Made by a program: the position numbers and the translations under genes. Under the pieces are notes generated by a model. The model ran no database searches and had not been told where the DNA came from. It was given only the letters and a program-made list of their open reading frames with translations. Below, in pieces: positions 4,740 to 23,400 of a stretch of DNA of 64,000 nucleotides. This stretch comes from Chrysemys picta bellii (taxonomy: Eukaryota). The DNA lies in NCBI RefSeq assembly GCF_011386835.1, contig NC_088814.1:930001-994000 (forward strand), written 5' to 3'. Positions within the stretch are counted from its first letter, which is position 1. Each line of letters begins with the position of its first letter.

Positions 4740-5605
4740 CTAACACTACTCTTGGGATAGCCTAGGATTGGAACGTGGGCCTGGGCACTGTGTGTCAAAC
4801 ACAACACAAAGAGGGAAAACAGAGGGATGATTAGAAACAGAGAGTTCTGCAGTACCAGCCCTAAGACCGAAAGGAAACGAAAGACCCGCAGCTGGGAGAT
4901 AAAGACACCTGGGTCTTATCTAAATGAGTCCCAAGCAGGTGATGTTGGTTACCTACATCTTAGGGGATAAACAGCCTTTCCCTGTAACCCTTCAGCCTAC
5001 GTGGCCAATTCCCCCAAGCAGAAGGAGTGACAGAGAGTGGAGAGCAGACATATCCATCGAGGAAGCTAATACACAAACAGCAGTAATGAGACCAGGGCAA
5101 TTCTGGGATGTCCCTTATTGATTTACAACTGAAACATGCTCAGTGGTTGTCTTGAGAACTCTTCACTGTTTATCAGGTTTCAGATTTTGACGAATAGAGA
5201 TTCCTTAACTTCATTTCCTTCAACCGTGGAAATCGGTAAAATGACCAGTATTCCCCAGCCTTGCCTTTGCTTTTCATGGCAGCTCAGGGCTCCGTTCTCT
5301 CACTTTGCTATGAATCAGAGAGGTTACCCAGCAGCCTCCCAGCTATTAAGGAGTCCGATCAGCAGCAAAGCAAGTTAACACTTGCTCGCCATAACCAGAG
5401 TGAGGACACAAAAGGGGGCAGAGATAGAGAAACACTATTGATGGGCACACGCCAGGCAGGTCCCTCTCATACCAGAGAGAGGAGAAAAGCAGCACTCCCA
5501 AGTCCAAGAGAAACCTTATTTTGCAAATCTAAATGTACCTGGGAGGTCCTGAGACACTAAAAGGATGGGCACAAAATTAGAAAGAAAAGTTACACAGAAA
5601 CCTAC

Positions 5606-7175
5606 CTCCAACGTCCAAGTCCACTTTATAATTGATGGAATGGGTGTGTACCGTCCCCAGGGTGTGATCCCCAACCCTATTGCCATAGTCCAGACCGTCA
5701 CCATACAGAAAGGATGAAGTCATGTAGCCTGTGGCTTGGACTTTGGCCTCGATCGCGCCGTTCTGGTAGAAGATGAAGTCCCAGATGTAGTCATAGTTGC
5801 CCAGAGTGGCAATTGACCGAAGGACCAGAGCAGAGTTGGTCAGACCCCCGTAGTACAGGGACTGCAAGTTGGAGTAATGACGCCTCAGAGGAGACCCAGT
5901 GTTCTGCTCAAAAATGCAGATGGAGTTCTTATGCTTTTCAGGTGTGTCTGTTTCAACTAAGTAGTGTGTGTCTACGTAGGTGGCTGAATAGGGGCAATCA
6001 ACCCCCTGGACTAACGAGTACGTCAATCTCCCGATGCCAAAGCTCCCATCCATGTACCTGGTTGACATCCCTCCAGGACAGTTGGACCCATAGACAGATG
6101 TAGCATCCTGGACACTGATTTCATAGACAATCCTCTCCCCCTTAAATCTGATGTCAAAGAGACGCATCCCCGTGTTCACGTTCACCCCAAAGGCAAAGCT
6201 CCAGGCCTGCGAGACGACTTGGTTGTTTCGGACACTGTAGCGGGGCCCGTGCGGCTCGTACTGCAGAGGGAACGGAGCCCTGGGGGCTGCTCGGGGCTGC
6301 ATGGAAGAGAATCCCCCGTCGGGTGGGGCTCTCGTAACTGGGGCCACTTTGACACGGCCCTGCTTGAACTCGCTCTCCAGCTGCACCAAGTCCCCGTAGT
6401 ACTGGCCGTTATAGAACACTTTTCTCACCCGCCAGTGGGAGACGTCCAGGCTGCTGTGATCAACCAGCACCTCCAGCCCCACCGGGTGCAGGAAGTAGCC
6501 GCTCACGTTGTGGAACAGAGCAAACCAGGTGCTGCGGTCTCCGGACTGGAACCCCCGGGGGGCTGAGGTTAGTGATACAAAACTGGTCCCATCATAATTA
6601 AATACCTGATGCAGGAAGGTAGGGGCTGTTGAGAGCGCCTTCTTCCGTAAGAAGGTTTCAATCTGCTCATACTCCTTACCCAGCACCGGTCTGCGGTGAT
6701 ACGGCAGCTTCCCTCCGTACTTCTGCACCGTGATGTCCTGGTGAGTCGTCGGCTTGGGCAGGGGACCCACCACGTACTCCGTGACATTCGGATCTGGTTG
6801 GTTTCCAAAATACACCACAGCCAGCGCCTGCCGCGGGGGTCGCCTGCCCCCACGATCCAAGAACCCCAGCACCTCTGCCTTGGTGGGGATCTGCACATCG
6901 ATGTAGTAAATGCAGTTATCGGAGGGGTTTGCATTATAGGCGTCTACCAATGGCACCCCAAGGCTGCGCTGCAGGTACCTCACCACTTGCCCCATTTCTT
7001 CCGGCGTCAGATCAGCGAAGACCAGGCTCTGATCACTGTGCTTTCCCCCCTGGCTGCTCAGGGGCTGCGGCTCACAGCTGGCTGGTTTCACTCCTCTCGT
7101 CAGCAACACACAAACCAAAGCGAAGATCGTGGCTAGTGCCAAGACTAGGAGGATGAGGACAGTTTTCAGGTTCAT
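5606..7175 (-). CDS. AOC3: Copper amine oxidase (AOC3/VAP-1-like) giant coding exon 1, proximal copy; exons 2-4 not found in window
   Basis: 523 open codons + 1 nt from ATG: N-terminal hydrophobic anchor, catalytic Asp (YMDGSF), TPQ motif TLGNYDY, Cu ligands HTH, ending KVDLDVG G|GTAGG at the conserved phase-1 donor. Whether it is AOC3 or another AOC paralog is uncertain. Confidence 0.92.
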
Positions 7176-7853
7176 GTTGCTGCAGCCACGAAGGCAGAGG
7201 AGACTGTGAGGCTTCAGGAGCCACTTCCAGAGTGGTGTTCCCAGCTACAGGCAGCCCGTTTAAGATGCAGCTGAAGGGGTTAAGTACAGGAAACATGAGA
7301 TGTGGAGGCGAGGTGGGAGGAGGAGATATGAAGTTTGTGGGGACCAGAAAGGGCAGGTCTTCACTATCAGCCCGTCCAGCACGCTCTGTTACAGCGTAAC
7401 TGATCTACAGACGACCAGTTACAGAACAGGCGCCATTACTTGTTTGTTCAGACCAACTTCCAGAGGCTGCCTGTAGAAGTTGTGATCTAAACACTCAGCA
7501 TCAGTAGGGGGTGAAACCAAATCTTCAAAAGGCTGGAGATTTTTTGCTATAGTGCAGAATTTCATCCCTTCCCGACTCACTGAACTTGGACTGCTCCTGG
7601 GGTTCCTTCTCATGAACTCTCTCCACGGCGGCTAGGTTCTGGGTCTCAGTCGGATTTGCTCTTGCATTTCCTTGGTAAGCAGGGTGGTTGTATTGTTCTC
7701 TCTGATAAGGGTTTCATCTTGACTGTGGCTCTGGATTAACCAACGCTCGTTTGGGACAAAGACTAGAGCCTAGGGACACAGCAAATGTGGCGGAAGGAGC
7801 GAGGCGCTAGGTGATGATTTGGATGTTAATGCGCACTCAGGCCTTGCCTACAC

Positions 7854-8267
7854 CAGGGCCGGCTCCAGGCACCAGCCCACCAAGCTTGTGCTTGGGGCGG
7901 CACCTGGAGGGAGGCGGCGCGGTGCGGCCCTCCGGCTCCGGACGCTGGGGCCACGGCCAGGCTCGCCGCCCTCCTCCCAGGGCTCCGGCACCTTCCCCCC
8001 AGCCACCGGGGAGAGCGGAGCCCCAACCGGGCACTCCGCCCTCCTCCCAGGGCTCCGGCGCCTTCCCCCCAGCCACCGGGGAGAGCGGAGCCCCAACCGG
8101 GCACTCCGCCCTCCTCCCAGGGCTCCGGCCGTCCTCCCCCCGGCTGCCGGGGAGAGCGGAGCCCCGGCCAGGGCTCACCGCCCTCCCCCCGGGGCTCCAG
8201 CCGCCCTCCCCTCCCCCCGCGCGGGGGGGGGAGGGGGCGGGCGGCAAAAAAGCCAGAGCCGGCCCTG
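7854..8267. mobile_element. Non-autonomous hAT-type MITE (family A, copy 2) carrying an internal 70-bp tandem repeat
   Basis: TIRs CAGGGCCGGCTC / GAGCCGGCCCTG; perfect TSD GCCTACAC (7846-7853, 8268-8275); about three 70-bp units starting at 7971, 8041 and 8111. Confidence 0.9.
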
Positions 8268-9392
8268 GCCTACACAAAGGGAATCGACAGAGGTGCAGTC
8301 CTCTAATGGAGCCATGAAGCACAGCTGACGTCAGGGGCCTCTGATGGGGTTTGCATTGGGGTAACATCTCTAACAGACAAGGCCTCCCTTCCCCCCACCC
8401 ACGCCCCCGCCCCAATTGCAGGAGTCAGCATGTCTGGTTGCTAACATGAAGCAGGTCTTTGTGGGATGGAGGGGAGGCAGGGGACCCAGCTCCTACCGGT
8501 GCCATATCTGGCTGGGGGGGCGGTGCAAAGTGTCTCTTTCTTACGGTTCCCTTTTTGCAGAAGCCGTTTTAATTTAAAGACCCTCTCCCCCCCCAAAGCT
8601 GCTGCTCCCCTGGTGCTTCCCCAGAGCCCCTGCTGAACTGACGCCTTGCTGAGTTGCAGCCCGACAGACAGACCGACCTTCCGACAAGAAAACTGCGACC
8701 TGGTCTCTTAGCCTCATTGAGACGAATGGGGCTACAGTGCATAGACACTTAGACGACACCAATTGTTTCAGCCAGCAGATGGCGCGCGCAGTCGCACCAA
8801 ACCACCCTGGTGTGTAGGACGTTATATAAAACTCTCAAATAACCCCCCAGGGGAACTGCCGCTGGAAAACATGCCTGGCTGTGTCAAAACACGAGGAATT
8901 CAGCAGCCGCAAGGAGGCCAGTTTGGGGTCCGAGTCTTGGGCCCTGAACTACAAACGTTCCCAGAGATCAGTACATGCTTAGCACGGCACAAGCTAATCA
9001 GCTAATCCACAGTCGCTGGTATCCCTGCTTTACACTGGGGAAACTGAGGCACGCTGGGGAACGGTGACAACCCCAAGGTCACCGGGAGAGGCAGTGGTTA
9101 GAACTAGCAAGACCCTGGCTCCCACCCTATGCCTGACAACTGACGGGTGTAAGAAAAATACACACATTTCCAAACTGCTACCTTGCACGGTTTCCCTGGA
9201 GCAGCTGCCACTTGCTGGGATTCGCATGGCTGCTGGGGTTTGTGACGTTCCCTGACTCTTCATTTGAATAAGTCAATAAATAACATGGCAAAGAGCTCTA
9301 AGGGTAAGAAAGTGAGCAAGGATGCTGCTGCTGGCCATCTGCAAGAGTTCTGCATCTTGGGGCAGCCCCCACTCCTGCAGTTGGACAGAATA

Positions 9393-9605
9393 CAGGCAGT
9401 CCTCTACTTTATCACCTTCGACTTACGACGAACGGCACTTACGCCGTTTCTGAATGGACACCCTGATTCGACTTACGACAATTAGTTTCAACTTTAGGAT
9501 GTTCGGTCCCGCAATAGAGTGGATTGCGGTTCCGAGTTAGGACGTTTCGACTTACGACGCAATTTTCAGGAATCAATTTTGTGTCCTAAGTCCGAGGACT
9601 GCCTG
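9393..9605. mobile_element. Tc1/mariner (Tigger-like) MITE
   Basis: TIRs CAGGCAGTCCTC / GAGGACTGCCTG flanked by TA on both sides; internal repeated TTCGACTTACGAC motifs. Confidence 0.85.
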
Positions 9606-9665
9606 TAGCATGTAATAAGTGAGAGGCACAGGAGAGAGAGAAAGAAACATCACCAAGAGACCTAC

Positions 9666-11235
9666 CTCCAATGTCCAAGTCCACTTTATAATTGATGGAA
9701 TGGGTGTGTACCGTCCCCAGGGTGTGATCCCCAACCCTATTGCCATAGTCCAGACCGTCACCATACAGAAAGGACGAACTCATGTAGCCTGTGGTTTGGA
9801 CTTTGGCCTCGATCGCGCCGTTCTGGTAGAAGATGAAGTCCCAGACGTAGTCATAGTTGCCCAGAGTGGCAAGTGACCGAAGGACCAGAGCAGAGTTGGT
9901 CAGACCCCCGTAGTACAGGGACTGCAAGTTGGAGTAATGGCGCCTCAGAGGAGACCCGGTGTTCTGCTCAAAAATGCAGATGGAGTTTTTATTAATTCTA
10001 GGGTTTGGGGATTGAGCTAAGTAGTGTGTGTCTACGTAGGTGGCTGAATAGGGGCAATCAACCCCCCGGACTAACGGGTACGTGAATCTCCCGATGCCAA
10101 AGCTCCCATCCATGTACCTGGTTGACATCCCTCCAGGACAGTTGGACCCATAGACAGATGTAGCATCCTGGACACTGATTTCATAGACAATCCTCTCCCC
10201 CTTAAATCTGATGTCAAAGAGACGCATCCCCGTGTTCACGTTCACCCCAAAGGCAAAGCTCCAGGCCTGGGAGACGACTTGGTTGTTTCGGACACTGTAG
10301 CGGGGCCCATGCGGCTCGTACTGCAGAGGGAACGGAGCCCTGGGGGCTGCTCGGGGCTGCATGGAAGAGAATCCCCCGTCGGGTGGGGCTCTCGTAACTG
10401 GGGCCACTTTGACACGGCCCTGCTTGAACTCGCTCTCCAGCTGCGCCAAGTCCCCGTAGTACTGGCCGTTATAGAACACTTTTCTCACCCGCCAGTGGGA
10501 GACGTCCAGGCTGCTGTGATCAACCAGCACCTCCAGCCCCACTGGGTGCAGGAAGTAGCCGCTCACGTTGTGGAACAGAACAAACCAGGTGCTGCGGTCT
10601 CCGGACTGGAACCCCCGGGGGGCTGTGGTCATAGCTGCTAAATTAGTTCCATCATAATCAAGTACTTGATTCAGGAAGGTTCGAGCTGTGGGAAACGCCG
10701 TCCTCCGTAAATAGCCAGCAATCAGCTTGTACTCAGCATCCAGCACCGGTCTGCGGTGATACGGCAGCTTCCCTCCGTACTTCTGCACCGTGATGTCCTG
10801 GTGAGTCGTCGGCTTGGGCAGGGGACCCACCACGTACTCCGTGACATTCGGATCTGGTTGGTTTCCAAAATACACCACAGCCAGCGCCTGCCGCGGGGGT
10901 CGCCTGCCCCCACGATCCAAGAACCCCAGCACCTCTGCCTTGGTGGGGAGCTGCACATCGATGTAGTAAATGCAGTTATCGGAGGGGTTTGCATTATAGG
11001 CGTCTACCAATGGCACCCCAAGGCTGCGCTGCAGGTACCTCACCACTTGCCCCATTTCTTCCGGCGTCAGATCAGCGAAGACCAGGCTCTGATCACTGTG
11101 CTTTCCCCTCTGGCTGCTCAGGGGCTGCGGCTCACAGCTGGCTGGTTTCGCTCCTCTCGTCAGCAACACACAAACCAAAGCGAAGATCGAGGCTAGCGCC
11201 AAGACTAGGAGGATGAGGACAGTTCTCAGGTTCAT
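9666..11235 (-). CDS. AOC3: Copper amine oxidase (AOC3/VAP-1-like) giant coding exon 1, distal copy; no exons 2-4 found before the next copy
   Basis: Same length (1570 bp) and same phase-1 donor (KVDLDIG G|GTAGG) as the 5606-7175 copy, offset exactly 4060 bp; open frame with Asp, TLGNYDY and HTH intact. Confidence 0.9.
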
Positions 11236-14200
11236 GTTGCTGCAGCCACGAAGGCAGAGGAGACTCCTGGAGCTTTACAGCAGCTCCCAGAGAAGCTGCC
11301 GTCAGCCTGTTTGGACTGTGGCTGGATGGTTAGTACAGGAAACATGAAAGGTGGAGAGAGGCTGGGGGAGGAGATCTGAAATTTGTGGGGACTAGAAAGG
11401 GAAGGTCTTTGCTCCCAGCCCATCCAGCACGCTCGGTGGGCCTCCAAGCGCACTGCATTAGGAAAACTACTGGAGCCGCAGGGCCAGTGACTCATAAGAC
11501 AAATTTCACATCATTATGTCGCTTTTTTTAGTTTGGCCAGTTTGCTTAGGTTCCCACGAGGGCTGGGATGGTGTTGTCAGCATCAGGTTAGGGAATGGAG
11601 GTGGGCACATTACCAGCCTGTGAGAGTGGAGATTTCACCACCACAGCTTAGAATTTCACCTCTTTGCATTTCACTGAGTTTCCCTAATGTCCCAGGCTCT
11701 TTCCTTCCGCACACCCACGCCCTGGCAGTGTGGTTTTGGGTCCCAGTTTGACCTCCAGCAGCAGGTCCTGTGTGGAGGAACGTGCCCAGCTATGGAATAG
11801 CCAAAGGGATGGGGCAGCCCCGGCCAGGTCATTTAGGGCCTTAGTCTCAGCACCCAAATCACAATTACTAATTAGCCCCAGCATCATGCCCCTGCACAGC
11901 CTGTCATTAGCCAGTCTTGGTCACACTCCCATGAGACACCTCAGGGTCATTATTAGCCCTGCTCCGTGGGGCGAGAGGAGATGACTTCCTGCAGGGCACC
12001 GGGAGAGGCAGAGCCAGGGTTAGCACACAGGAGTCCCTGGATTCCACCCTCTCCCCAGGCTGCCTGGCCGCACACTGGTGACCAGCTTGGTACCGGATGG
12101 GCGGGTTCAGGGAAAATAGAAGGCACATTTTCCCTGGACTGAGCATGGCGCTGGCAGCCTCCTGCTGGAACTCCCACTGGTTAGCATGACTTTTCCAGCC
12201 TCACTTTAATAAGTGACTGTTTTCCTTGGTCTCCCTGAACCTCCAGAAAGGCGCAGGTGTCCCAATGTGCTGGTGAGACAGAGACAGGAGCCTGAGACTG
12301 TTCTGCAGAGAGCAGAGATCTGGGGCGCACAAGCCCTGCCGGATCTCCAGCCTGTGCTGAACACACAAGGAAACCAAGAGTCAAAGCAAGTTTCCATTCC
12401 TGCTGCCAGCCTCGCCTCACCCCTGCCTCCCCTCCCTCCCTCCTCCTGCAGGCAACACTCACTCTTTCCTGCTGGGGGCAGGTTGCTTCCTCCTCAGGCA
12501 GTTCCACCTTTACTTCGTCCATTGCAGCTTCCCTCACCTTGGCTTTGGACCCACCCCCCTGCCCTGTGGAGAAGCATTTAGCCAGCGCTGCTCTTGACAA
12601 AGTACCTACATCATCCCAGCAGCCTTCTCTGGCCTCGTCTGCAGCTGCGAAGACAGACACAAGCGGACTCATGTCATTTCTGAGTCCTTGGCAGCTAGTC
12701 TAGCGCTGTGGCGAGGGCAGGAGCCGCTGCGGTCACCATTCACCACAAGGCCTGTTGGCAGGAGAATTGGACACATGGCTACCCCAGAAACATGCATCTT
12801 CCATTCTGTGGGACTCGCTAGTATCACCCCTGCAGACAACACGAACCCAGGGAGGAGACAATCCAGGAGTGGCCCGTACAGCAGCCGGCTAAGAGCGATG
12901 CAATGACAGTTCACATCTCCTCTAAGCGGTCTAAAGCCAGGCACGGGCTGCAAACACAGTGCTTTTCTCAGTGACAGCGAGTGCTTAAAGAAAGGTGGAG
13001 AAGCCCTACAGCCGCCTGGATCCAGCGCCGAGGGAGCTTCAGGATGGCCTGAACACAAAGGCTTGGGACTTGTTCGGTGTGTTTCGATATAGATCTAAGC
13101 TCACTAGTTACCCCACAGTAAAAACCAACCAACCCACGCTAATGAGCGGCCTATTTGTGGGGAAGGATACAGCAACGTGGAGGGAATTTGCTCTTCTCTG
13201 CTACTGCTCCCACGAGTTTCGAGCCTGTGTATATGCCCCAGGATGTCCCAGTGCAGCGCAGTCTAAACGTGCAGTACTTGATACCGTCTACTTCTGTGGC
13301 ACTTTTCCAGCTGAGGGATCTGAAAGCATTTGATAAAGTTCTCCAGAAGGACAGCAGCCCCCCACTGCAGGCCATTTTCAGAGTAAGTGGAGAACAAACC
13401 TGAATCCATTTCAAACTGCCAGGGAAATTTCAGGAAGCAAATGAAATGAACTGAACAGCAGCACAGCCGGGACACCTGTGCAAACACTCCGACTCTTACG
13501 AAAAGTGAGCTGGCTTCTTTAAGAAGCACAAGTGCTAAAGGCCTTGGTTTTGTCTCAACTAAGAACACCTCCAGCAGCTAGCTAACTCGGAACGTAGAAA
13601 GTATCAAGTCTTCTTACTAGCAGCAACACAACTTTATTCCGTTTCAGAGCGTGTACCCCGTTCTACACGTCCTAGCCAGCCGCAGTACGGAACTTCTCGC
13701 AGCCCTGCCCCAGAGAATTCACTTCCTGCTGAGGTTTATTTTAGCTAAATTCCTTTTTGGAACCACCTATTGCTACATCCTGGGTTTGGTAAATTGCCCA
13801 CCTCTTCCTGCCCCCCTGAAGGAGTGAGAAGGGAAGAGTTTTGTGTTGTTCTGAGGAGAGCAGACTGTGCAGCTCACACAACAAGAACAGCTGCACAATC
13901 CGTCTCTGCAACATATCGGAACCAAACCCAAAGCCAGCCAGCGGCAGCACCAGAATGCCAGCCACCTGGGCAGGAAGCACATTACTCGACTCCCCAGGAG
14001 CTGGCTGGGTCTGTCTACTTGCAGGCAGAACTCCGGCTGCAGGGAGGTTTACGTTCCTTGTGCTCCCATTTTCTCCTGGCTGCTAGTTACATCATTTTAA
14101 ATGTCAAAGTAAGTTTGCTCGATGCTCATTCACCCTCATTATATTGTCTGCAGGGACGGGGCAGTTGGCTGCTGTGTCTTGTTGCCCTTTGATGGGCACT

Positions 14201-15905: not shown

Positions 15906-17411
15906 AACGGGAAGACGAAGATTGGACTTACTACAAACAACAACGAAGGAGTCTATCGAAAGGGCAGGGGGCCCTCCACGCTCAGAGCAACCCCTGGGAA
16001 ACCAGCAAGAGACAACGGGGCTCTTCAGCATAGAAGAAGAAACAAAAGCAACAGAACGCAAGAGGGAAGGAGAGGACGTTCATTCCATTTCTCACGACTA
16101 ACAACTCTAAGGCTACTGCACAAGAAGTTACAGGTGTGACAGTGAGACCCATGGAAGCTACAGGGGTCCAAGACCAACTGACCCAGCTTTCCCCTGAAGG
16201 AGGGTGTGAAGTAAAAATACCATAAATAAGAAAACGTAGAAGAAACCTGCAGCGTCATGAGCCCGTTTCCCACACATACAAAAACTGACCATGCAACCGA
16301 CCGTTTCCCATGGGGTTTGCAATGGGCCTGGGAGGAGCGCCTGGGCACAGGAGAAGGAATCGAGGTACCTTTCACGGGGTGCTGAGGTTCTGATACTGAT
16401 CTGCTGTGGCTGCTTTTGGCCGTCCTCATTCCAAAAGGTCAGCCATCGCAGCCAGCCTGCCCAACCCTGCCCCCCAATACACTCGGCAGGCGACTGTGCG
16501 TCACAACCTGCTAATTCCTTCGCATCAGTGGAGACTACGAGGACTTCACAATTTGAGCTCAGGCCTCTCCCTAACTTCATTCTGGACAGAAATGCCTCAC
16601 GCCGAAGGAGACGTGTGAGAGTTTAACATCGGTTTGAACCAAGAAAACTGCTTTTGTAGAGCCAAGAGGAAAGCTATGCACAGGAGCGAAAGCCACCCGG
16701 GCTCTGAACCTGCCAACTTAGCGGGACGTGACTGGGTGGCAGGTGCTCCACATAGCCCTCTGCACGGATCTAGCTGCATTTCACAAGGGAGAGGGACAAA
16801 CTGGGTGGGATCTAAAGTAAGATAGCTCTTTCCTGGCTTGTTCGAACCTAAAAATCTCTCCATGGCACTTTGCTGAGCGCGGCTGCAGCCTGGGCTAGGG
16901 GAGCCGCCTGCTCCAAAGGGGCACGTCCTCCCAGCCTTGCATTTAACAAGCATAAGACAACTAGCAGCAGAGGGGTCACTCAGCTGGCACTGAGAAGCAG
17001 CTGGCTTCTCGCAGGCAGCACACACTCTGTGGACTCACTCTAGTGCTGAAGACACTGCATCTCCTCCATTCCCAGGGACCCCAAGGAAACCCTGCAGCTG
17101 ACAGATGGGGGGCGAGGGGGAGAACCCCAGGGCTCGGTCTCTCATCCAATTCCCACCTAGCTAGGAAGAAAGGCTTGAAGGAGCATTCCCATCCCATGGC
17201 AGTGGCCCGCTCAATACCAATTACTACATTAGGGAGAGTTCCTGAGACCTGAACAAAACCAATCACAGAACTAGGCGAGGGTTTCTTTAGAGTTTAACTA
17301 AGAGTGCAATACTATTTCCAGCCAGTTTCCCATCTCGATAGTCACGTAACAAACCAAGGCAATGACGGTCTTTGAGTTGACTGAACAGTTCTCAAGTTCA
17401 AACGTTGACAC

Positions 17412-20400
17412 TTAGTAGAGAGTCTCAGCGTTGCTGCTCCGAGGCCTCTTGATCTTCTCAATGTTTTTAAGGATCATATCATGCAAAGTGACCTGGAAGG
17501 AGGAGGAGAAAGACCATGGATGCACGTCAAGAGTGGGACGTCCACGATTTGACTTAACTCCACTCTCACCATAAGCACTGGCCTAACCTGAGTAATGGCT
17601 GCTCTTAGTTACAGCCCCTTAGCCCTTCCCCACCTCACCAGCCCTTGCCCTCAAGCAGCATGTCATGTCTCATGTCAGGCAGTAAGCGCCTTAGGCAAGG
17701 CCTCGCCTGTCTGCACTCTGAAGAGACCAGCATGTTTTGGCCACTGAAAGCTCCACCGACGAGAGTGAGTTAGTTAACGGCGCCCAGGACTGGCCTACGC
17801 CATCTGGAGAGGTTGGGACGGAAGGTTCCAGCAAAGAGCACAATGAACTGCATGGCCCAGGACTCAGCCCAGAGGCGGGAAATACCAGACTCTTCAGGGC
17901 AGCGAGTCGCCGCTCTCTCTGCTTGCTAAGAGCAAAGGGAAAGCAGAGGCCCAGGCTCTGAGGTGGGATGGATCCCAAGGGTGCTTCTCCACAGGGGAAC
18001 GCATGAGCCGGGGTCCCAACTCTAACTCACATATTGATTCCTCAGCTCGGAGATGATTAAGCGCAGACTAATGTATTCCTTCTCATCAATTTCTGTCACC
18101 GTGCGGCGATAATCCTCCTACACAGAGAAGGGAGAACGTGGCTGTGAATAGCCTAAACGCCAGGCTGCCCCTCCCTCTACAGACATCAAGGGGGCTCTCT
18201 CCTGTTCAATCTCATGCATTCAAGGGCACGAGGGGACCGTTGTGATCATGTAGTGGGGCCCCCTGTATAGCACAGGCCAGAGACCTGCCCCAAATAATTC
18301 CTACAGCTGAGAGTTTAGGAAAACCTCCAATCTTGAGTTAAAAATTGACAGTGATGTAAAATCCACCACGACCCTCAGGAAACCGTTCCAGTGGTTAGTT
18401 ACTCCCCCGGTTAACACCACACACCTTATTTCCGGTCTGGATTTGTCTGGCTTCAGCTTCCAGCCAATGGATCGTATTAGACCTTCCTCCGCCAGACTGA
18501 AGTGCCCAGTATCAAATATTGGTCCCCCCGGTAGCTACTTCTAGACTGTGATCAAGTCACCCCTAAACCTGCTCTTTGACTAAATAGATTGAGCTCTTTG
18601 AGTCTCTCACCATAAGGCAGGTTTTCTAATCTTTTAATCATTCTCGCAGCTCTGCTCGGAGCCCTCTCCAATTTATCAACCTCCTTCTTGAATTGTGGAC
18701 ACCCCACAACTAGAGACAGGATTCTGGTAACAGCTGCACCAGTGCCAACACAGAGTTAAAATCACCTCTCTGCTCCCGCTCAAAATTCCCCTGTTTATGC
18801 ATCCTAGGATCACATTAGCTCTTTTGGCCACAGCATCACACTGGGATCCACCATGACCCCTAGATCTTTTTCTGAGTCACTGCTTCCCTACATTCTTTGT
18901 TCCCAGAGGTACATTTATCCATATTAAAACAGATATGGTTTGCTTGCACCCAGTTTACCAAGCAATCAAAATCACTCTGAATCTGTGACCTGTCCTCTTC
19001 ATTACTTACCACCCCCAATTTTTGTCAACTGCAAACTTTATTACTGATGATTTTGTGTTTTCTTCCAGGTCATTGATAAAGATGTTAAATAGTATAGGGC
19101 CAAGAACTGATCCCTTCAGGATCCCACTGGAAACAGACTCGTTCAATGACGATTCCCCATTTACAATTACATTTTGAGACCTATCAGTTAGCTGGTTTTT
19201 AATCCATTTAATGTGGGCCATGTTCATTTTATCTCATTCTAGTTTTTTAATCAAAATGTTGTGTGGTACCAAGTCAAACGCCTTACAGAAGTCTAAGTAT
19301 ATTACATCAACACTATCACATTTATTAACCAAACTTGTAATTTTATAAAAAAAATGTATCAAGTTAGTTTGAAAGAATCAGTTTTTCATAAAACCATGTT
19401 GATATGCATCAGTTACATTGTCTTCCTTAGTTCTTTAGTAATCAAACCCCATATCAGACACTCATTGTCTTGCCTGGGATTGCTGTCAGGCCTATTATTA
19501 CCCAGGTACTCCCATTCACCCTGTATATACTGGCACAACATTAGCTGTCTTCCAGTCTTCTGGAACTTCCTCAGTGCTCCAAGACTTATTGAAAAAAAAT
19601 CAACATTAACAGTCCAGCGAGCTCCTCAGTCAGCTCTTTTAAAACTCCTGGATGCAAGTTATCTGGACCTGCTGATTTCAAAATGTCTCACTTTAGTAAC
19701 AGCTGCTTAACATCCTCCAGAGATACTAGTATAGTGGAAATAGTGTTATCACCATAGGCTGAGACTGTATGGTCTGTTTTTCCCCCCCCCAAATGTAGAA
19801 CAGAATTATTTAGTGACCATTTTCACCTTTTCTGTGTTATTATTGGTAATTCTACCATCTCCATCTAGTAATGGACCAATACCATTGGCGGGTTCTTTTT
19901 GTTCTTCATATATTTTAAAACTCCCTCTTAATGCCCTTTATTCTACTGGCCATAGATTTCTCCTTGTGTCTCTTTGCATCCCTTATCGATTTTCTACAAT
20001 TCCTAACTTCTGATTTATATTTATTATTATGAGTTTTCTTTTCCCTTGAGAGAAGCCAGATCCTTCCAGCCCTGCAGGCTCCCCTCCCAGGGCTCCTAGC
20101 CACCACAGGGTCCCTCCGCCAACCCTCCAGGCTCCCAGGCCCCACAGGACTCTGGCAGCTGCTGCTTAAGGGAGTCAGTGATAGAAACAGCCAGTCGAGG
20201 GCTATCCACAGAAACAGAAAAACAATTAATTCTCTCCAACCCCAGCAAACGCTCAGCAAAGAGATGCTCCACTTACCACATGAGGATATTTTGCTATTTT
20301 GGAAACCAGCTTTGCCCTTGTGATATAGTATCTGGAAGGGAAGAGGGTAGATTTAATAGTCAGAAAATAGCAAAGCAGTGTTCTCAGACCTTGCCTTAGC

Positions 20401-23400
20401 CACGGGGCTCAAGTCCTTACCCAAAAGCACTCAGCCTCCCCAGAGAGGGACCCAGCGAAGATTGCTCATAGCCACCCCTTCCCCACCTCCACCTACCTAG
20501 AAATCTGGTCCAGATACGAAGCTGCCTCGCTCTCCACAGTCCGCAGCTCAGCCACCGTCTCCTCCTGCAAGGGAGCCACGGACACAGAGTGAGTGAGCTT
20601 CACAGCAGAAGCAAGAAACTCCAACCCCACTCACGTGTGCAGCCACCCAGGGTCCAGCAGCTCAGTCTCTGGCCACCTTTAAAGTTGCAACAGCTACTCG
20701 TCAGGGTAGAATCAGACACAGGTTTCGAGCCTCAGTCAGTTAGCGAAGGTTACAGGAACATAGGAGCCAGCAGGAACCATCAGTTCCTGGCCATAATGAC
20801 CCCCTGCACCAGCCCCACACAGCCCTACAAATTAAGGCTGCTGATCCTCTGAGCAAGGCAGACAAGTTCCTGGGAGATTCAGGGAAGAAAGCAATGCAAA
20901 TAGCTTCACACAACCACCCTGATCCTGCCAGGTTAGGGTGCTGGGTGGAGCACACAGCCTTCCTCAAACATGGGTCAGCTTTACTGGGTCTTGCAAAACT
21001 ATGGCACGGCTCCCAGGCCTCTGAGCAAAGTGAGGCTTTTAGGCCCTCTCTGCCCCTCCCTCTTAGATGCCAGGGAAGGATTCAGGTTTCAACGACCCCT
21101 CGAAGAGCCCTTTGGAGGCAGAGCCAGGTGGATCTAATGAAAGGCTCCTCAGAAGCCCAAGATGCCCTGGCGTCTGGGGCACTGGCACATAAAGGAGCCA
21201 TGTGGCCACGGGTCACCTTACCTGAATAGAAACGCCAAAGTTGTTTCCATCTTCTATCCTGGGGATCAGAAGCTGCACCCACATTTTGACCTGGAGGGAC
21301 GCAAAATGACCCTGTGACTGACTGAGTGCAGACAGCACTGGAGGGCCCTGCCTTTAAATCAGGACCTCTTATTGGGGGCCCTCGGAAACTCTCGCTCGAG
21401 CAGCTCATCCCAAGACCGTCTCAGGGCCTGGCTCATGCGGGGACTGGGGACAAGGCCCGATGCCTTGACCTCTCCTGGGAGCCCAGGACATCCACCCAAG
21501 CATTAAGGGAAGATTCTGTCCCTCGATTTTACTGAAGCCCCACTCAGCAAGTATCCGCCACAGGCGTGCCTGGTGCTGTACAACGTCACAGAGACGCAAG
21601 CCCTTCCAAGCAAAGGACTGGCAGGAGGGAGCTAGCTGAGGGCTGCAGTGACTTCAGGCACTGGAGTCAGGGCAGCTCCAAGCACATTTGGGAAATGCAC
21701 CTGCCCCTTTGGGCAGCATCCTCTTCAGAGGCCACGAGAAGCGGGGGAGAGGCGGAGTCCTACATGGCCTTATCCTCGAGGTAGGATGGAGGCCTAGTCC
21801 ACTCTTTATGGATCCCTGAGAAGCCCTGATGCTATGGGGCAGGAATTTGGACAGCTGGGTCTGGGGGCTGGTTGCCGTACTGCCCCATGCTCAGGCCCAC
21901 ACCCACCGTGTTGCACTTCTCAATCAGCAGCCTGATCTCCGGTTTCACTTTCTCAATGATGTCCACTAGCTGCTGGTTACTCTTCAGCATCCCATTGGGC
22001 ATCACAAACACTTTGGTACCTAGCGCCAGAGGGGAAAGGTCAGTTATTCACAGCAGCTCACCTCAGAGACCGCCAGCTCTGCACGTGTGCTAACCACGCT
22101 GGATCACCGTGGGGACAGGGATATTTAACAGGCTATTACAAAGACTACCACACGGGAAGGGGAAGAGAGACAAGACCCGGGAAGAAACCCAAACTGGAGA
22201 AACAGGGTGCAAAGGGAGCTCCCTGAGGCACACGTAGGAGCTGCCTCTGTTTCAATGCAGCACGAGGCCTGGCAGCTCCCTCCTTCCACGAAGGGGTCAG
22301 GCGGCTCTAAGTCTGCTCCCTCCAGCAGCATGCCAGCTCCCATGAGCCCTACTCCAGTCTCTTGGGAGAGGCCAAGCTCTGCTCAGCAGAACCACTAGTG
22401 GGCTCCTCCGTGACTCAGTTTGTAAGAGGAAAGACGGACAGGCCTGGGTAGGGCAGTGGCAGTCGGGAGAGGGCAGGTGGAGCTTGTGCAGTTTCATACC
22501 CCTAGGCACGGAGCGCTGGCTCAGCGGGCAGGCAGCAGCACAGAGACTTGGGGACTCTTACCCTGGAAGGTCTCTTCACAGTCTTCCAGCTTCCTCTTTT
22601 TCATATTTGGCTAAAATACATACAACAAAACGTTTTACTCCCCAACCACCCGGGACTTAGCGCGACAGCAGCGAGGAAATTTCTTACAGAACATCTTCGA
22701 GGGTCCTGATTTCAGAGCAGCCTTCCCCCTCCAACTGGGGCTGGGTTACAGAGCAAACACAGCACCACCTCCAGCCAGGATCCACGGGCTGAAGAGACCA
22801 GTTCTCACATGCTCACGGGCGGCTGTGGCCTGTCGTTAACAGGGAACAGCCTAACCGAATGCACAGCAGGCCATGCAGGTTTAATTAATGTAGCCAAGGG
22901 AGGAATCTTACCCCGTCCAGTGCATCATGGCTGTTAGTGAGAAGGATCGGGTCAGGGACAGGAAGGTTCATGTCTGAGTGGATCTGGGTGAGATCATGAA
23001 TATTCAGGATGGACTCCTGGAAAACAACAAGAAGTCACATACAAATCTAACAACTTTTGTCATGTTAATCGCCAGGAAATGGGAGATTCCAGACCTCAGG
23101 TTTCATCCAGCCACCAGGCAAGCGAGAACAGAGGCAGGTAGGAAGATGGGACTGAGAGGACTAGGAAAATGGATTGTAAGTTTGGGACCGAACCCGTTAG
23201 GTTTCTATCCAGTGCCCAGCTGATGGGATCCATACACTATCACAGTCCGTAAGAGACACTGGGCCGAGTGTCATGGGCTAATGGCATTCAAATGGGTATA
23301 AAGCAAGTTTGGGACACTGCTATTCTCTGTTTTACTCTCTGCTCTGACTAAAGACAACCCCTCCCCAGGGTCAGGATTGCATGCTGGACACTGAAGTGAA

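Follow-up and report, generated by a model that had tools for sequence, protein, structure and literature searches.

In humans, AOC2 (retina-specific amine oxidase) and AOC3 (VAP-1) are neighbouring paralogues located by PSME3. The non-mammalian AOC2-4 clades are separate from the mammalian ones, and a family-wide phylogeny treats the reptile AOC2 and AOC3 as ordinary genes (PMC12058724). We describe here a locus of the painted turtle Chrysemys picta bellii, found in a window of 64,000 nt of forward-strand DNA (no N in the window), which belongs to the same family and has the same domain order, large first exon and neighbourhood as human AOC2 and AOC3. Whereas the human forms are separate genes, the turtle forms are two first exons, designated exon 1A and exon 1B, which share exons 2-4 and are near-identical by gene conversion. 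We consider it probable that the locus is a single copper amine oxidase gene with two alternative first exons, homogenised by conversion except in short 'islands', and giving two isoenzymes with different substrate channels.

The list of open reading frames (ORFs) contains two intact minus-strand ORFs at 5.5-11.5 kb, each of 1570 nt and running from an ATG to a GAG/GTAGGT donor. Public contigs were aligned to positions 5500-11450; these contigs are assemblies, from runs that are not on record as RNA and whose tissues are not on record. The exons and their borders, including each 5' untranslated region (UTR), are placed as follows.

5606..7175, minus strand: exon 1A, proximal first exon of the copper amine oxidase gene at the AOC2 position; ATG at 7175, last exon base 5606, phase 1; intact ORF
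9666..11235, minus strand: exon 1B, distal alternative first exon; ATG at 11235, last exon base 9666; intact ORF; Pfam domains as in exon 1A
5600..5605, minus strand: 5' splice site of exon 1A, GTAGGT; from the sequence and the end of a run X1 contig at 5605
9660..9665, minus strand: 5' splice site of exon 1B, GTAGGT; from the sequence and the end of a run X16 contig at 9665
7176..7386, minus strand: upstream flank and 5' UTR of exon 1A; homologous to the B flank, diverged; a contig extends to 7533
11236..11434, minus strand: upstream flank and 5' UTR of exon 1B; homology to the A flank; a run X16 contig extends to 11316

Repeated DNA is limited to 5579-7386 versus 9639-11434, or the exon and some 200 bp on its upstream side. 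The product of exon 1A matches residues 1-524 of a 756-aa Chrysemys picta bellii protein (P0137) at 100% identity, and both exon products match PF02727, PF02728 and PF01179 (N2, N3 and catalytic domains in Pfam) above cut-off. The part of the catalytic domain held by each exon corresponds to positions 3-221 of the 407 in PF01179, the remainder being in exons 2-4. Both exons keep TLGNYD (the motif of the trihydroxyphenylalanine quinone, TPQ), the Asp at VAP-1 position 386 and the HTH copper ligands at 520-522; the third copper-ligand His, as read from P0137, is in the shared exons outside the window. Each first exon supplies the membrane anchor, D2 and D3, together with the initial half of the catalytic domain, where the TPQ tyrosine, catalytic Asp and HxH pair are found. 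Exons 2-4 were found nowhere within the 64-kb window; since intron 1 measures about 5 to 9 kb in other turtles, they are placed beyond the window start. The PSME3 (PA28) gene, which is the neighbour that AOC2 has in mammals, lies upstream of exon 1B at window positions of about 17390-21224 on the minus strand, as judged by colinearity with the Trachemys locus (L003, 97% identity).

Exons 1A and 1B differ at 73 of 1572 nt, which changes 44 amino acids. A preliminary description of this DNA had reported near-identical tracts interrupted by three clustered blocks of difference, with upstream flanks more diverged than the exons. Both observations were borne out, down to the positions and the peptide strings. 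Three patches totalling only 186 nt contain 54 of the 73 nucleotide differences (binomial p = 1.3e-34), so that A-B identity is 71.0% within the patches against 98.6% elsewhere in the exon. Outside the exon, identity is 62% for the upstream flanks (-300..-30) and 47% over the initial 200 nt of the intron; only the last 30 nt or so before the ATG are identical in the A and B flanks.

6561..6683, minus strand: patch 1 in exon 1A; codons 165-205; VAP-1 172-214; first helix of D3 plus the 208-213 strand
10621..10743, minus strand: patch 1 in exon 1B; codons 165-205; B-type clade at 100% bootstrap, Cryptodira and Pleurodira
6000..6029, minus strand: patch 2 in exon 1A; codons 383-392; VAP-1 393-402; L394, S397, Q400
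10060..10089, minus strand: patch 2 in exon 1B; F394, P397, R400
5925..5960, minus strand: patch 3 in exon 1A; codons of about 406-417; VAP-1 of about 416-427
9985..10020, minus strand: patch 3 in exon 1B; invariant in six durocryptodiran B exons except for one residue in Chelonoidis

In patch 1, the A-type residues are E177, Q178, E180, F208, S210 and L211, and the B-type residues K177, L178, A180, G181, L208, A210 and M211 (VAP-1 numbering). With a synonymous divergence (dS) of 0.52-0.61 between A and B, this patch is an old island, as is patch 3 in cryptodires. Patch 2, in contrast, is young: L394, S397 and Q400 are derived in the emydid exon 1A only (Chrysemys, Trachemys, Malaclemys, Emys), and at this patch exon 1A of most other turtles has the residues of exon 1B.

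The orthologous locus was taken from eight other species, and the grouping of A and B by species outside the patches was tested in six turtle species. Outside the patches, A-B dS in one species is 0.022-0.041, against 0.16-0.32 for orthologues among non-trionychian turtles and 0.52-0.59 to Carettochelys. In a tree of the 1384 out-of-patch sites, the A and B exons of Chelonoidis, of Caretta and of Emydura group together (100% bootstrap each), and four emydid sequences form one clade (100%). The patches and flanks give another picture. In the patch 1 tree, all B exons of Cryptodira and Pleurodira form one clade at 100%; Chelonoidis exon 1A falls inside it because its first 1000 nt are identical to exon 1B and include a B-type patch taken from it. 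In the patch 3 tree the B type is again a clade at 100%, Emydura exon 1B having been converted to the A type. The flanks also group by copy type: across species, A flanks are 78-100% identical and B flanks 85-99%, compared with 62-66% between A and B. Difference maps of seven species contain the same two islands plus lineage-specific erasures, and permutation tests on runs of concordant sites back concerted evolution.

Near-identity could also result from independent recent duplications in each lineage, or from an assembly artefact, and high identity alone would be compatible with either. Against this, orthology of the flanks and of the patches follows copy type in eight assemblies (100% bootstrap), and public contigs carry B-specific letters. 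The arrangement is conserved as well, the order PSME3, exon 1B, exon 1A, with the exons 3.5-4.1 kb apart, being found in Chelonoidis, Trachemys, Emydura, Caretta, Mauremys and Dermochelys. Because the flank and patch trees follow type, independent duplication and assembly error are excluded, and we give them virtually no credence.

Conversion has also left recent traces. At eight out-of-patch difference sites, B alleles of the contigs have the letter of the reference A, and new variants are found at homologous A and B positions in different runs (6341/6343/6344 with 10401/10403/10404, and 6228 with 10288). From these shared variants, seen in assembled contigs of runs from unknown individuals, it follows that conversion is still ongoing in painted turtles. 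Paralogues closer than orthologues, a mosaic phylogeny and shared variants are thus all present, and it is nearly certain that conversion homogenises the scaffold of the exons, as the preliminary description had proposed; the concerted evolution that it suggested looking for across several turtle species was found in both dS and trees. The direction of conversion varies, as illustrated by the B-type patch 1 received by exon 1A of Chelonoidis.

A further first exon takes part in the process. Downstream of exon 1A lies an AOC3-like paralogue (exon 1 at L006:28152-29760 and L002:25462-27081), whose first 450 nt or so are 88-99% identical to exons 1A and 1B of the same species, while orthologues of this segment are only 80-87% identical to each other. 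Identity to exons 1A and 1B falls to 56-62% exactly at patch 1. This pattern implies that conversion links three first exons, and that the 5' edge of patch 1 is a common tract boundary.

One apparent case of complete homogenisation was dropped. The Mauremys isoforms X1 and X2 had been taken as two fully homogenised first exons; X2 is a chimeric model, and Mauremys exon 1B keeps patches 1 and 3. Isoform X2 of Mauremys mutica (P0142, locus L006) joins the first 110 codons or so of exon 1B to the rest of exon 1A; the near-identity of the exons most likely misled the gene model or the read mapping here. Separately, exon 1A of Emydura macquarii is frameshifted by a one-base deletion (L004, near 14782), which would be either an assembly error or a loss of exon 1A in this pleurodire.

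We then considered whether exon 1B is used. A run X1 contig follows exon 1A to its end at 5605/5606, and the letters after this point read as the beginning of P0137 exon 2. A run X16 contig has the 3' end of exon 1B (9665-9847, with B-specific letters) joined to the same exon-2 letters as those found after exon 1A. In runs X16 and X18, exon 1B is covered throughout by contigs and exon 1A by none, whereas run X1 contains all of exon 1A plus the B-specific patches. Separate 5' UTR contigs extend to 11316 for exon 1B and to 7533 for exon 1A. In Dermochelys, an annotated 756-aa isoform (P0160) consists exactly of the exon 1B orthologue and the shared exons 2-4 located beyond exon 1A. Exon 1B is therefore transcribed and spliced to exon 2, and each first exon leads to a common exon 2, in runs X1 and X16 and in Dermochelys P0160, as in variable-first-exon genes. 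Wherever the locus reaches far enough (Carettochelys, Mauremys, Dermochelys, Emydura), one set of exons 2-4 lies beyond exon 1A.

Several observations weigh against this use of exon 1B. A run X18 contig continues past the exon 1B donor for 123 nt into the intron (9543-9665), which corresponds to an unspliced form. The NCBI models for Chrysemys and Trachemys present exon 1B as a truncated 549-aa read-through product. The splicing of exon 1B to exon 2 in Chrysemys is read from one assembled contig, and for its run neither the tissue nor an RNA origin is recorded. Finally, the donor of exon 1B in Chelonoidis abingdonii is GA instead of GT (L001:11571-11572).

These observations could be explained if exon 1B were a non-functional leftover, its frame repaired by conversion from exon 1A, with transcripts that are unspliced or yield a truncated and inactive 549-aa product. 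Exon copies do die at this locus, as the Chelonoidis donor, a relic in Carettochelys and two broken alligator copies (see below) indicate, and the ratio of nonsynonymous to synonymous rates (omega) is close to 1 in B patch 1. However, the contig joining exon 1B to exon 2 comes from a run without any exon 1A, the Dermochelys isoform is full-length and headed by the B exon, and the alligator uses the exon at the B position. Moreover, the exon 1B ORF is intact in 8 of the 8 turtle species examined, including the never-converted patches, and the GT donor in 6 of the 7 for which donor DNA was read. A search for a poly(A) signal for a 549-aa read-through mRNA found no AATAAA near 9543. We thus hold a leftover exon 1B to be quite improbable, and conclude that exon 1B is an alternative first exon and not a separate truncated gene, on evidence that is good but not final.

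The Chelonoidis GA donor occurs in the lineage whose exon 1A took a B-type patch 1; this lineage may be losing exon 1B, or the GA may be a sequencing error. Gene models of Malaclemys and Macrochelys also run exon 1B into downstream sequence, and the protein search gave many bird 'isoforms' of 506-553 aa that consist of exon 1 only. In this gene family, first-exon transcripts that are unspliced or truncated may be common.

The other species also bear on the age of the duplication. Carettochelys insculpta has only exon 1A, plus a short degenerate relic upstream, at the place of exon 1B (L002:8456-8638, residues 21-90, 46% identity). The locus of Alligator mississippiensis contains three exon-1 copies. 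The first, at the B position and with a B-like upstream flank, is the one in use, being spliced across some 13.5 kb; it has the B state at 8 of the 9 patch-1 positions that are fixed between the turtle types. The second, 3.6 kb further on, is broken and retains an A-like EYEQ motif, and the third is also broken. Both broken copies (L007:13614-15172 and L007:21271-22843, with stops and frameshifts) lie between the used first exon and exons 2-4. Given this three-copy locus with B-like and A-like copies, the duplication predates crown turtles, and probably also the split between turtles and crocodilians.

What distinguishes the two exon products was examined by residue correspondence, taken from a HMMER alignment to human VAP-1 (1pu4_A). 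In human copper amine oxidase structures, Phe173, Tyr176, Leu177, Asp180, Thr210, Met211, Thr212 and Tyr394 line the channel or touch channel-bound ligands, and subtype specificity is set by channel residues while the catalytic site is conserved (review PMC7144023). The A/B residues at these and nearby positions are G/D at 173, Y/Y at 176, E/K at 177, E/A at 180, S/A at 210, L/M at 211 and T/T at 212 for patch 1, and L/F at 394, S/P at 397 and Q/R at 400 for patch 2. The preliminary description, which had matched these two blocks to channel residues and pointed to the E-to-K swap at 177, is upheld by the alignment and by the literature (PMC7144023). As far as the aligned sequences tell, the differences in patches 1 and 2 affect the mouth and wall of the substrate channel, at 177 (E/K), 180 (E/A), 210 (S/A), 211 (L/M) and 394 (L/F). 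Pro397 and residues 417-426 are not mentioned in the structure review PMC7144023, and nothing on the structural place of patch 3 (VAP-1 417-425) was found in a full-text literature search.

Residues 211, 394 and 469 were reportedly named by Kaitaniemi et al. in 2009 as specificity differences between AOC2 and AOC3. Positions 211 and 394 differ between the turtle exons and 469 does not, both exons having Gly at 469 and, in the same comparison with human AOC2 and AOC3, Thr at 212. Since patches 1 and 2 alter channel residues, the gene should make two isoenzymes with different channels, which we regard as likely from the sequence, and the channel differences would in turn alter substrate preference.

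A more delicate question is whether selection keeps the islands, the preliminary description having proposed that it maintains two specificities, with dN/dS in the patches as a check. Codon analyses are confounded by conversion and involve few sites. In patch 1, omega between types is 0.32-0.63; this exceeds the values for the exon background (0.15-0.33) without reaching 1. Comparisons within a type give 0.56 for A and 1.07 for B. As omega is raised within types, this stretch is fast-evolving in general, and the values give neither a signature of diversifying selection nor a detectable constraint on B patch 1. A McDonald-Kreitman-like contrast for patch 1 is flat, with nonsynonymous to synonymous counts of 11:5 for fixed and 32:19 for variable differences (p = 0.77).

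Such values would be expected if the islands were passive, that is, if a divergence of about 30% led to mismatch rejection that stops conversion tracts, with no selection involved, the channel being the least constrained and fastest-evolving part of the protein. Identity in patch 1 is 70%, which is near that of the never-converted flanks (62%), and divergence itself blocks conversion. The same stretch is the part most diverged from the AOC3-like paralogue, whose conversion also halts at its 5' edge, and among VAP-1 orthologues of mammals, too, the first helix of D3 is where differences are concentrated (PMC7144023). Patch 2 is specific to emydids. Patches have been overwritten in some lineages (patch 1 in Chelonoidis, patch 3 in Emydura, parts of patch 1 in Trachemys and Terrapene), and those that lost an island show no obvious harm. 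All of this speaks against selection.

On the other hand, these overwritten patches indicate that the barrier is leaky: conversion can enter or cross the islands, yet most lineages retain them, which counts for selection. Nine patch-1 residues are fixed and type-different in all turtles sampled, and have been so in each type for more than 200 million years. In A/B order, they are 177 E/K, 178 Q/L, 180 E or G/A, 181 I or T/G, 186 E or K/T, 189 S/P, 208 F/L, 210 S or P/A or V, and 211 L/M, and four of the nine (177, 180, 210 and 211) are documented channel positions. Patch 3 of the B type hardly varies, even at synonymous sites; fixed differences in this patch number 9 nonsynonymous and 0 synonymous, against 7:8 for variable ones (p = 0.0095, for a region chosen post hoc). 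For patches 2 and 3 together, omega is 1.2-2.7, on few sites. The proposal that selection keeps two specificities is thus no more than plausible: the fixation of type-specific residues and the patch 3 counts favour it, and the omega and the flat contrast of patch 1, patch 2 and the lineages with homogenised patches do not. In our estimate, the chances that selection maintains the islands are about even, while entirely passive islands are rather unlikely. The islands would then be kept by selection together with the mismatch barrier that arises from divergence itself.

The history and working of the gene may be pictured as follows. The gene would adjoin PSME3 at the mammalian AOC2 position, exon 1B being distal and exon 1A proximal, each with its own 5' end. 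From the same type of donor, both first exons would be spliced to a single common set of exons 2-4, situated outside the window, over 5.6 kb past exon 1A. Recurrent interlocus gene conversion since the duplication would keep the exons about 98.6% identical, with tracts that stop inside the exon or just beyond it, and for this reason the flanks would show the true age of the copies. Patches 1 and 3 would be old islands mostly not crossed by conversion, and patch 2 a young change in the emydid exon 1A. The outcome would be two isoenzymes with the same catalytic core, different channels and different promoters.

The spacer between exons 1A and 1B contains a GC-rich 70-bp tandem repeat in 3.5 copies (window 7966-8211). 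At its borders (7852-7920 and 8239-8268) are short stretches that are present in many unrelated contigs of all four runs, and which are probably the ends of a dispersed repeat. The comparisons reported here used exon references and database proteins, and the Ns in locus L001 were kept unchanged.

If the proposed explanation is true, the locus would provide a clean natural case of one gene giving two enzymes that differ almost only in their substrate channel, at positions that are treated as specificity-determining in drug-design work on human VAP-1. It would also be a very long-lasting case of conversion and island persistence in alternative exons that belong to one gene. Ready-made chimeras, with which the roles of the patches could be tested, would be available in several turtle lineages. 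For annotation, the emydid 549-aa 'genes' at this locus would be the first exons of the neighbouring gene. On a longer time scale, one may tentatively suggest, at somewhat less than an even chance, that an old amine oxidase locus built like UGT1A is common to turtles and crocodilians, and that its scaffold has been held uniform by conversion while selection protected the channel islands for more than 200 million years, the lineages that lost an island being natural chimeras that map the specificity residues.

Theory of concerted evolution with islands that escape conversion is reviewed in PMC3924837 and PMC3966226. Functional islands under concerted evolution are a well-known phenomenon, as are variable-first-exon genes. 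We found neither described for amine oxidases, and a literature search on AOC genes gave no specific result for conversion or for alternative first exons. Among variable-first-exon systems, UGT1A and the clustered protocadherins resemble the turtle locus in having tandem large first exons with their own 5' ends, which hold the specificity-bearing part, and one constant set of exons. In contrast to these, the turtle locus has only two live exons (in the alligator, three copies of which two are broken), its variable exon also contains half of the catalytic domain, and its exons are homogenised by conversion where those of UGT1A and the protocadherins diverge freely. Among systems under conversion, the primate red/green opsins and RHD/RHCE are like the turtle exons in that paralogues are closer within species, the phylogeny is mosaic and divergence is found in short functional stretches. 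The turtle case differs from them in that its units are alternative exons of one gene, that the process is at least as old as crown turtles, and that the direction of conversion varies.

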